Shown here: positions 33,853 through 36,722 of the stretch, in pieces
Position numbering within the stretch: position 1 is the stretch's first letter
Layout: each line of letters begins with the position of its first letter
Assembly (NCBI RefSeq): GCF_000315625.1
Contig: NW_005434607.1
Span: 122,825 to 186,824 of the forward strand
DNA length: 64,000 bases
Direction: 5' to 3'
Source of the DNA: Guillardia theta CCMP2712
Lineage: Eukaryota > Protista > Cryptophyta
Program-made: the position numbers and the translations under genes
The notes under the pieces: generated by a model
Database searches by the model: none
Told to the model about the DNA's origin: nothing
Seen by the model: the letters and a program-made list of their open reading frames with translations, nothing else

Positions 33853-36722
33853 TCAGCCTAGTAGATTCTTTAGCGCGCAGTTTCCCTGAGAAAGTTTGTC
33901 ACATGACGTCCAATAAAAAACAATACTGAGATGACCTGTTCTTGTACTCCGGCTCGATTCGGATACTCTTGCATCCCCTAAGTTTCGTGTTAGCGCAGAG
34001 AAGTTCCAATTCAGTGATAGAAATACTTGACGGATGATCTGTGGAGCTCCTTCTCGGATCGCTATCGCTTTGCAGTCTGGGTCCAGCGCCAAGTGCCTCA
34101 AAGCCCAGCAGCCGTATTCCTACAAACAAGGAAATGTGAGACATCCTCGTCCTTGAGACATCATCCATACCTGGACGCCGGGGTATTGCAAGTTCGTTTT
34201 CATGCTCTTGCAAATCGCTGGGATGCCACCCGCATGTGCGATGATCTTGCGGTTTGCTACGCACAAGGAGGCCAAATTTCCCAGAGCGAGGCCACCCTGA
34301 GTGCCTGAGTGGGTGGGATGTGCATGCATGCCAGCAATGATGGGAGGAATCCCTCCAGATCGACCGATTCTCGCTTGATTGCTTTCGTTACTCCATGCCA
34401 AATCTCCAAGAGCGAGGCCACATTGTTGCTGAACCGATGCCTTACTCACATGCATAGTCATTCCATTGATGATAGCCTCGATGCCACCTTCTTGAGCAAT
34501 TCTGTTCTGATTATCGGCATTGCCCCATACAAGCTTCCTTATGCAGCCGCAGGCCTCCTCAACTATTCCAGCATGACCTGGATAATTTCTGAGTGCGTCA
34601 ACAATCAATCGAGGTGCTCGAGAAGCCGCAATCTTCTTTTTGTTGGCCTCATTCAATGACAAATTTTTCAGAGCCCAGCAGCAGTACTGCAAGCAAAGCT
34701 GATGATTGGAATGTTTCTCCATGGCGGCAATAATGGGAGTGATGCCGTCAAGTTGTGCAATTTTCACCTGGTTATCTTCCTGACAAGCAAAGTTCCCAAT
34801 AGCCAGAGCGCACTTTTGTTGGCAACCCGCATTCTCAGCAAACCTGTTCATCGCTGCAATCGTTACTTGGATTCCACCGCATTGTCCAATCCGCTGTTGA
34901 ACCGCGATGTTACTCCATGCCAGATCCCCCAACGCCAGAGCTCCTTGCTGTGACACATTCAACCTGGAAGGGTGAGCCTTCATACCGGCAACAATGGCCT
35001 CAATGCCTCCTTCGGCTGCGATCTTGTTCTGGTGCTCAGCATTTCCCCAAGCAAGTTTACCAAGTGTCTGACAGGCCTCATCGACTATCCCAGAGTGACC
35101 GGGATTTGCTTTTAAAGCCTTGATCACTGGCCGGTGTCCGTTCAGCCTAATAATCTTAACTTTGTTATCAGCATTCAAGCAAAGGTTCTTCAATGCCCAA
35201 CAGCAGTACTGAATACACAAGGGGTGTTGGGGATGCTCCGTCAACGCTTGCAGAATCAATTGAATTCCATTAAGCAAGGAAATTTTCACTTGATTTTGGG
35301 AATGGCACGCAAGGTTTCCCAGTGCTAGTGTACATTTTTGCATGCAACCTCCACTTCGGACGTGCGTTTGCGTAGCTCGGATGATTTCTTCTACTCCACC
35401 AAGTTCAGAAATACGCAATTGAATAGCTGAATTGCTCCAAGCTAAGTTACCCAACGCGGAGCAACCCATCTCTTGAACATCAACATTGTCTCTGTGCGCA
35501 CACATACCAGCAATGACGGCCTCGATTCCTCCAGCGGCTGCAACAGAATTCTGTTCATCGCTCTTGCCCCACACCAAGTTACGAATCACTTGCATTCCTT
35601 CAACTTGCACACGAGCATCATGCACACAAGTCTGTAACGCTGCCACAATTTGTTCCGGTTCACCTTTTTCTTTGTTTCGTGCAAGAATAGCAAGCGCGTT
35701 CTCAATGTCCGCTGAGCTGTAGCCAAAGGATACATTTTGCATACCGTTTACATTGTCGATTCCGCTCACACCAACAGGACCTGAGCTGTTGTTAAATGCT
35801 GATGCTCCAGGAATATCTCTCGGCTGGATCCGGTTGGGTGGATTCTGAATTTTCTCTATTTCCTTTCTGAGTTTCTTTACTTGAATCGCGGTCAGTTGCA
35901 AGTCTGATCCTTTGAGATCTTCGTCAGAAAAATCCAACAAGTCTTTGCCACACACGCCGTTTTCAAGAAATCTTTCAATCTTCTCCGCGGGAATGAACAG
36001 CCTTGCCAGCATCTGACAGACATCATCTGGTTGCATGTTTTCAACACTGACTATGTTGCTTTCGTCATTGTTGTTTACTCCTTCGTGCGAGGCGCTATTT
36101 GATTTGATTTCTTTTTCAATTCTGGACATGAGCTCTCGCAGCTTGTTGTTGTAGGTTCTTGAATCTGCCAAGTCCAGTATGAAAAGCTTGCTGAGATGAG
36201 GAGCGATTGCATGCTTTGGCGGGATATGTTCTTTGCCCTCAGCACTCAGTGGCAGAGGGCCAACCTTACATCAACCATGTAAATAAATACTCTCTCAATC
36301 AAAAACATGTACCTTAATAGGTATCACCGGCTTGCCCCAGTAGTTTGCAAGTGTGATTTCTTTCTGCGCAATTGGACTTTCCAGGTAGCTTTGCGAGAGA
36401 CAGCAAACAAAGACATGGCAAGAGTCAATTGCTTGTGCCGAATCCAAGTGTAGTACATCCTTGTTTGGGCCTGAAAGTATATTCGTCAAAAACAAGATTG
36501 AAGGTAACAGCAGACGTATCGGTAGCAGGTAAACTATACCGCTTGGAGCTTTGTCTCGGTCATCCCACCATGCAAGATAGCCATTCTTTTCAATGTGTGC
36601 TTTGGTGGGTCTTACTTTATCAGAATCAGCGAATGAGCATGAAACAAAAATATCTTTCGAACAAAAAGGAGTTAAATACGACAGACATATCCTTTGTAAG
36701 AAGCACCTGCAGTATTGCTCAT
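33853..36722 (-). CDS. TIR - SAM - armadillo-repeat protein (7 exons, ~849 aa)
   Basis: Exons 36722-36707, 36653-36540, 36470-36313, 36264-34171, 34119-34027, 33977-33936 and 33885-33853, all GT-AG and in phase. TIR: DIFVSCSFAD...GYLAWWDD...AQAIDSCHVFVCCLSQSYLESPIAQKEITLANYWGKPVIPIKV. SAM at ~36045-35848 (VENMQPDDVCQMLARL...FLENGVCGKDLLDFSDEDLK...KKLRKEIEKI). ARM repeats at ~35660-33856. Confidence 0.85.

Follow-up and report, generated by a model that had tools for sequence, protein, structure and literature searches.

A cryptophyte gene encoding TIR, SAM and armadillo-repeat domains in the reverse of the SARM1 order

Could the three kinds of module found in SARM1, namely an armadillo-repeat (ARM) region, a SAM domain and a TIR domain, have been joined on a separate occasion and in the opposite order in a cryptophyte? 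The question is raised by a gene of Guillardia theta CCMP2712 in a 64,000-nucleotide stretch of contig NW_005434607.1 (positions 122,825 to 186,824 of the forward strand), which is called the window here and to whose own numbering all coordinates refer. TIR domains serve as enzymes that cleave nicotinamide adenine dinucleotide (NAD+) in immunity and cell death in bacteria, plants and animals, and such activity in protists has only just been shown. A sequence-only reading of the window had proposed that the gene encodes a TIR domain with an intact catalytic Glu, one SAM domain and about 13 ARM repeats, assembled independently of SARM1 into an immune or cell-death switch. From the data presented here it was concluded that a transcribed gene encodes such a TIR-SAM-ARM protein, which resembles SARM1 in its parts and perhaps in its logic but not by descent.

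The gene was rebuilt from the sequence by exon joining and lies on the minus strand, with a coding sequence (CDS; 36722-33853) of seven exons and 849 codons. The six coding introns, of 53, 69, 48, 51, 49 and 50 nt, are all of the GT-AG type. Public RNA and complementary DNA (cDNA) runs were screened by sampled words of 33700-36900, and four runs were mapped to this stretch. About 80% of the sampled words were present in many public runs, which is approximately the exon share of the stretch. Single contigs, assembled from the cDNA of three different studies (X1, X2 and X5) and 3.7-3.8 kb long, skipped all six coding introns exactly, together with a 71-nt intron in the 5′ untranslated region (UTR), and in a set of raw, 3′-biased RNA reads (X21) the three 3′ joints were backed by 6, 2 and 3 reads. 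An in-frame stop lies upstream of the main ATG, and the 849-codon frame is by far the longest open reading frame (ORF) of the spliced transcript. Furthermore, orthologous transcripts and proteins, including MMETSP and EukProt entries, were colinear with the model across every junction, including those of the three small 3′ exons. In the 87.1-Mb genome assembly (669 contigs) the SAM stretch matched itself and one 38%-identical SAM elsewhere, and the gene is therefore single-copy. The gene is thus expressed, single-copy and the source of an 849-amino-acid (aa) TIR-SAM-ARM product, and we regard the gene model and the three-domain architecture as very nearly certain. The three small 5′ exons had been proposed to be spliced to exon 4, with RNA evidence named as the check, and the cDNA contigs confirmed these joints. 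The N-terminal peptide written out in the sequence-only reading was the exact start of the rebuilt product, and its remark that the ORF list holds only fragments of the TIR domain is true of the mechanical list.

Profile and fold analyses of the domains used close orthologues (P0001, about 71% identical overall to the window protein, and P0002) and the unspliced pieces of the window. The TIR exon pieces of the window matched Pfam TIR_2 (PF13676) in register, at positions 1-33 (15.7 bits) and 45-89 (25.9 bits), and a six-frame search of the genome gave a window match to TIR_2 of 28 bits together with neighbouring pieces. Full-length orthologues scored 46.8, 42.6 and 57.5 bits, and the orthologue P0193 scored 48.5 bits, against a cut-off of 28 bits. 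For structure prediction, 1.8 billion representatives were searched with a profile; of the 1397 matches, 50 sequences were aligned (A2) and used as input to AlphaFold2. Residues 1-245 of P0001, the closest orthologue, were modeled with a predicted local distance difference test (pLDDT) value of 90.2, and residues 1-150 formed a TIR fold. VIA comparison of this TIR model gave Z values of 15-16 at 2.0-2.7 Å over 120-137 residues against Hydra TRR-2, human SARM1, Caenorhabditis elegans TIR-1, RPP1 and MyD88. Foldseek returned plant, animal and prokaryotic TIR domains mixed together (E about 5e-5, probability 1.00). The solved structures matched included the NAD+-cleaving enzymes (NADases) SARM1, TIR-1, Cat1, AbTIR and plant TIRs. 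Because VIA and Foldseek returned the same plant, animal and prokaryotic mixture, the modeled fold was deemed to be a generic TIR and not specifically near SARM1. A phmmer search of orthologue residues 1-245 against PDB sequences gave no matches, solved TIRs being reached only by profiles, and the PADLOC defence models gave only weak matches to ThsB and Aga-TIR.

The candidate catalytic residue, Glu81, lies in the motif S-x-S-Y-x-x-S-x-x-A-x-K-E-I. It was invariant in the family alignment A5 and at least 90% conserved in the wider alignment A2, which contains cryptophyte, hemichordate and metagenomic relatives. In profile alignments it coincided with the KE in SARM1 and TIR-1 and with the DE in Cat1. 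The GAA codon singled out in the sequence-only reading is therefore correct and stands at the catalytic position. As a sign of activity, which had also been read from it, the residue is weak evidence. This was deduced from the literature, where the Glu occurs in over 70% of TIRs overall and does not track activity (PMC7075850), and where cyclic ADP-ribose (cADPR) isomers were obtained in Escherichia coli from only 4 of 29 Glu-bearing protist TIRs (bioRxiv 10.64898/2026.04.20.719644). One of these four is L1IYH1 of G. theta, which in E. coli gave both cADPR and NAD+ depletion, Glu-dependently, so that this organism does possess NADase TIRs. Several cryptophyte TIRs are listed in the same study by accession only. 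L1IYH1 (1337 aa), the one G. theta TIR assayed there, is a different protein: it shares with the present one a TIR domain with the catalytic Glu but differs in its architecture, its TIR being C-terminal and of a longer type, and the two sequences are unrelated beyond the fold.

The SAM domain was assigned from structure. The SAM stretch of the window gave no Pfam SAM match even at E≤10, only sub-threshold noise (PAS_5 and SapB_2), and the orthologue P0006 was borderline on SAM_2 (19.6 bits against a 20.5-bit cut-off). Residues ~173-237 of the P0001 model formed a confident five-helix bundle (pLDDT 93-98). In VIA comparisons model residues 163-237 matched the SAM domains of Shank3 (Z 10.8, 1.6 Å, 70 of 72 residues), DGK-delta1 (Z 10.4, 1.5 Å, 67 of 68 residues) and BAR (Z 11.1). 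For helical bundles, Z values below about 13 may reflect a common arrangement, and since all these values are below that level, weight was placed on the full-domain coverage at 1.5-1.6 Å. In addition, a cryptophyte TIR-SAM profile aligned with hemichordate proteins in one stretch, from their TIR into a SAM_2 that Pfam certifies. The predicted SAM domain was accepted on these data despite the borderline sequence match. Of the three profiles that the sequence-only reading had named as a check, TIR_2 (in orthologues) and Arm exceeded their cut-offs, while SAM was borderline in an orthologue and gave no match in the window stretch. The SAM domains of Shank3 and DGK-delta1 both form polymers, and the SAM domain of the TIR-SAM-ARM protein may likewise self-associate.

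In the ARM region, exon 4 passed the Pfam cut-offs for Arm (41.2 bits; cut-off 20.6), ARM_ARMC5 (81.3; 79.9) and Atx10homo_assoc (96.6; 28.9). A phmmer search of the ARM region against PDB sequences returned designed ARM proteins, Vac8, plakoglobin, beta-catenin and importin-alpha. For residues 289-794 of the window protein, AlphaFold2 gave a model with a pLDDT of 95.2, a predicted template modeling score (pTM) of 0.90 and 34 helices. Foldseek matched this model to designed ARM proteins, beta-catenin and importin-alpha (E 1e-10), and also to a ciliary ARM chain and the ARM domain of LRRK2. The region is accordingly modeled as a canonical solenoid of about 13 repeats, the number anticipated from the sequence, with the 34 helices contributed by the exon-4 part and about 1.5 repeats by exons 5-7. 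Within it a unit of four repeats (~174 residues) occurs three times, and LG[ND]LAWS recurs at a spacing of 174 residues. SARM1 was absent both from the 60 PDB sequence matches listed of 87 and from the best 50 Foldseek matches for this region.

A length difference was observed in the environmental orthologue P0002 (659 aa), which is short of approximately one four-repeat unit (~174-190 residues) relative to Guillardia and Cryptomonas, near window protein residues 450-640. This may be either copy-number variation of the unit or assembly collapse.

A search with exon 4 returned a small protein family carrying TIR_2 and ARM Pfam marks. The Cryptomonas curvata orthologue P0193 (885 aa) is full length, and other cryptophyte members were the MMETSP transcript P0006, a fragment from Rhodomonas salina and a partial protein from Baffinella frigidus. 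Environmental cryptophyte-like contigs also carried orthologues or fragments. No hydrophobic segment resembling a membrane span was present in the protein (maximum 19-residue Kyte-Doolittle mean of 1.1), which is accordingly read as soluble, with a flexible linker between TIR and SAM and a second linker between SAM and ARM. Between Guillardia and Cryptomonas, identity was 43% for TIR, 84% for SAM, 82% for ARM and 23-31% for the two linkers, and across orthologues SAM was 80-84% identical. Repeat receptors that sense pathogens usually show the opposite pattern. As ARM and SAM are far better conserved than TIR, the comparison argues for contacts of ARM and SAM with conserved endogenous partners, presumably cellular ones, rather than for pathogen sensing. 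The proposal of an immune switch is weakened by this, an ARM region 82% identical between the two genera being unlike a fast-evolving immune receptor.

The relation to SARM1 was considered domain by domain. SARM1, dSarm and TIR-1 likewise combine these three types of domain in a single soluble polypeptide, the catalytic Glu of SARM1 aligned with Glu81, and the TIR folds matched with a Z of 16; a shared logic of regulator, oligomeriser and enzyme is plausible. However, SARM1 is ARM-SAM-SAM-TIR, whereas the cryptophyte protein is TIR-SAM-ARM, with the order reversed and one SAM instead of a tandem pair. The cryptophyte ARM region resembles beta-catenin, importin-alpha, Vac8 and ARMC5, and SARM1 was not among the ARM matches listed. 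The motifs of the SARM1 group-24 TIRs, which are Box 1 DVFISY, the BB-loop E(R/K)LEAG and the Trp before the Glu (PMC7075850), are missing in the cryptophyte TIR, which has DIFVSC, a variable BB loop and Ile77. Among the best 150 TIR relatives, none of the 29 that were scanned with Pfam had a SARM1-like architecture. Membership in the SARM1 family was therefore rejected, on motifs, architecture and match lists, the tree described below having been built without SARM1. The logic would parallel that of SARM1, while by descent this was concluded to be a separately assembled protein, which agrees with the independent assembly proposed earlier. The gene would represent a clean, single-copy and lineage-conserved case in which the three SARM1 modules were joined independently in the opposite order.

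The affinities of the TIR domain were examined in a maximum-likelihood tree of 42 TIR domains, these being the rows of A2 with at least 100 TIR residues after eight fragments were left out; the tree was unrooted. The cryptophyte TIRs formed a clade with support of 100/99, inside a 99/97 clade with TIR_2 domains of molluscs, amphioxus and hemichordates. This larger clade stood apart from the multi-TIR proteins of the bacteria Parabeggiatoa, Thioploca and Leptolyngbya. Because the tree groups the domain with invertebrate animals, the earlier description of a prokaryote-like TIR_2 holds only in the sense of the best Pfam model and not for its phylogenetic position. A similar layout was found in uncharacterised hemichordate proteins of Saccoglossus, Glandiceps and Ptychodera, TIR-SAM-Death(-NHL) and TIR-SAM-PCMT. 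These begin with a TIR_2 that has the Glu, one SAM comes next at the same spacing, and their TIRs fall in the same well-supported clade. They differ in having a C-terminal Death, NHL or methyltransferase fragment instead of ARM, identity is ~25%, and their TIRs were not resolved as sister to those of cryptophytes (82/36). Since the hemichordate TIR-SAM-Death proteins have it, the order TIR then SAM is not unique to cryptophytes. The mollusc and amphioxus Death-TIR proteins of the 99/97 clade carry other partner domains; they are of "group 18" type, which is meant as a likeness and not as an assignment to that group. A mixed group of protozoan and metazoan TIRs with diverse architectures has been described (PMC7075850). 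The ARM region, for its part, is like that of the ARM proteins ARMC5, ataxin-10 and Vac8, which have neither a TIR nor a SAM domain.

No published description of the TIR-SAM-ARM architecture was found in the literature on protist and cryptophyte TIRs, SARM1, SAM and armadillo proteins, in agreement with the earlier statement that no characterisation of it was known. Two further word-indexed homologue searches, with region 1-240 of P0002 and with the full-length profile A5, brought up members of the cryptophyte family and proteins with ARM alone, and nothing else. Neither search reached two clusters of the ESM Atlas (57 and 59 members, ~730 aa, Chlorophyta being the commonest label) in which TIR_2, SAM_2 and Arm occur together in some order; a mollusc cluster has TIR_2 and Arm, likewise in some order. 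A fold search of the ESM Atlas with the TIR-SAM model gave TIR-centred matches only. A distant environmental relative, P0016 (641 aa), has a SAM-like N terminus, TIR_2, an Ala/Glu-rich, coiled-coil-like stretch in place of SAM, and ARM repeats.

Domain shuffling was widespread in the genome. In G. theta the TIR_2 loci numbered at least 22 and the SAM_2 loci at least 29. The order SAM-protein kinase-ARM was found in two genes (L011, C77:104500-112500; L012, C111:52000-59500), and the order ARM (ARMC5/Atx10 subtype)-protein kinase-SAM in a third, on the minus strand (L013, C33:532500-541500). With 38% identity, the SAM of this third gene is the nearest paralogue to that of the TIR-SAM-ARM protein. 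In protists the same ARM subtype is fused to SH3, RING, BTB, F-box and caspase-like domains. As a separate observation, 8 of the 22 TIR_2 matches start stop-free open frames of 1287-1367 aa (contigs C150, C149, C23, C92, C184, C221, C228 and C33; L001-L008). These make up a separate, expanded TIR family of large, apparently intron-poor genes.

The mechanism that we propose for the TIR-SAM-ARM protein is an enzymatic switch, with ARM as regulator, SAM as oligomeriser and TIR as NADase. The ARM solenoid would bind a conserved endogenous partner or ligand, the SAM domain would drive self-association of the protein, this would assemble the TIR domains into the composite active site needed by TIR enzymes that cleave NAD+, and cleavage would yield either a cADPR-type signal or NAD+ depletion. 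NADase activity, oligomerisation and autoinhibition are what we infer for the protein, and the mechanism is put forward tentatively, at a little short of an even chance. A more specific form of it is a convergent analogue of SARM1, in which the ARM region would sense an endogenous metabolite or a stress-linked partner and restrain the TIR domain, and release would lead to SAM clustering and to Glu81-dependent NAD+ cleavage as a trigger of cell death or nucleotide signaling. This form is considered distinctly unlikely; if true, the regulatory logic of ARM, SAM and TIR arose at least twice. The gene would be a natural test of whether ARM regulation and SAM oligomerisation generally control TIR enzymes.

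Several observations weigh against the enzymatic switch, beyond the frequency of the Glu and the small active share among protist TIRs given above. Box 1 reads FVSC instead of FISY, with Cys for Tyr at a pocket position, and is in this respect unlike active TIRs. Three residues ahead of the Glu, where SARM1 and many active TIRs have a ligand-contacting Trp, stands Ile, Leu or Val (Ile77 in the window protein). The BB loop is variable and without a conserved Gly; it reads DKAPSGPNKD in the window protein and contains no Gly in P0002 or P0004. TIR is also the least conserved domain, at 43-56% identity among orthologues. Finally, a two-copy complex prediction of the window SAM (score 0.00, controls not run) gave no verdict and weighs neither way on self-association.

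These same features would suit a TIR domain that acts as a non-catalytic scaffold, the protein being an adaptor whose TIR and SAM recruit other TIR and SAM proteins while the ARM region docks a conserved partner, with no NAD+ chemistry. The Glu is common in non-enzymatic TIRs (PMC7075850), only ~14% of the assayed protist Glu-TIRs were active, the Tyr of Box 1 and the Trp of helix C are replaced, and the numerous TIR_2 and SAM_2 loci of the genome would supply possible partners. On the other hand, the Glu and the motif S-x-x-Y-x-x-S-x-x-x-x-K-E are invariant across the cryptophyte orthologues, the fold is as good a match to active NADase TIRs as to adaptor TIRs, and another TIR of G. theta is an active NADase. 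The scaffold was on balance judged to be somewhat unlikely. Should the TIR prove inactive, the gene would be a further example of how extensively TIR, SAM and ARM domains are shuffled in cryptophytes.

A second alternative is that this is mainly a housekeeping ARM protein, such as a cytoskeletal, flagellar or ubiquitin-ligase adaptor, with TIR-SAM as an accessory module for localisation or assembly and the SARM1 likeness a coincidence of shuffling. The best full-length structural match to the ARM model was a ciliary doublet-microtubule ARM chain (9cpc_1A, TMq 0.84), and the high conservation of ARM (82%) relative to TIR (43%) between Guillardia and Cryptomonas also favors such a protein. So do the fusions of the same ARM subtype to other domains elsewhere, and the presence in the genome of ARM and SAM joined to protein kinases in both orders. 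However, regular ARM solenoids superpose well whatever their function, sequence identity to the ciliary chain was only 16%, and TIR-SAM has been kept in every full-length orthologue with the Glu intact. This alternative was therefore deemed very doubtful. A third alternative is that there is no single TIR-SAM-ARM polypeptide, the TIR exons being part of another gene or an artefact of annotation, as might be suggested by the TIR fragments of the mechanical ORF list and by an annotated protein that was not retrieved from the protein collection. It has virtually no chance of being correct, since in three studies all exons are found joined on single cDNA contigs, with the GT-AG introns excised exactly, the ATG has an upstream in-frame stop and orthologous MMETSP and EukProt transcripts are colinear.

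The features of the gene are collected in the table.

Table. Coordinates of the TIR-SAM-ARM gene in the window and the basis of each assignment
Feature	Position	Strand	Basis
5′ UTR, at least 3 exons	36723..36960	-	cDNA contigs and sequence
5′ UTR intron, ~50 nt, apparently GC-AG	~36928-36879	-	contig loose end at 36880 continuing at 36960-36931
5′ UTR intron, 71 nt, GT-AG	~36827-36757	-	skipped in cDNA contigs
CDS exon 1, MSNTA and first base of codon 6	36707..36722	-	sequence, cDNA
CDS exon 2, TIR strand A and helix A (DIFVSC...AWWDD)	36540..36653	-	TIR_2 positions 1-33; cDNA joints
CDS exon 3, TIR core with helix-C motif SQSYLESPIAQKEI	36313..36470	-	TIR_2 positions 45-89, 25.9 bits; six-frame match; cDNA joints
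GAA codon of Glu81, catalytic-Glu position	36358..36360	-	read from sequence
CDS exon 4, 698 aa: TIR end, linker, SAM, linker, ~11 ARM repeats	34171..36264	-	sequence, Pfam, cDNA
CDS exon 5	34027..34119	-	sequence, orthologue alignment, cDNA
CDS exon 6	33936..33977	-	sequence, orthologue alignment, cDNA
CDS exon 7 with TGA stop (33855-33853)	33853..33885	-	sequence, orthologue alignment, cDNA
3′ UTR to poly(A) site near 33799	33799..33852	-	22 reads with T-run loose end before 33799
TIR domain, residues 1-150, three introns inside	36103..36722	-	orthologue TIR_2 scores, AlphaFold2 model, VIA, Foldseek
Predicted SAM domain, residues 173-238, five-helix bundle	35839..36036	-	VIA matches; borderline SAM_2 in P0006; TIR-SAM profile
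ARM solenoid, residues 289-849, ~13 repeats, introns 4-6 inside	33856..35688	-	Pfam, AlphaFold2 model, Foldseek, phmmer

The GC-AG joint in the 5′ UTR was deduced from the loose end of a contig, the mapped stretch having stopped at 36900. The spliced 5′ UTR (36829-36956, minus strand) contains two upstream ATGs in one short frame, an upstream ORF that counts 20 codons, or 10 if read from the second ATG, and that closes ahead of the main ATG. At the opposite end of the gene, 50 reads ending in an A-run indicated a plus-strand transcript (window 33700-33931) with a poly(A) site near 33931. Since this transcript overlaps the TIR-SAM-ARM gene in its 3′ UTR and its final two coding exons, the 3′ ends of the two genes are convergent and overlapping. 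A plus-strand ORF at 32851-33057, upstream in the direction of that transcript, has an EF-hand-like appearance.

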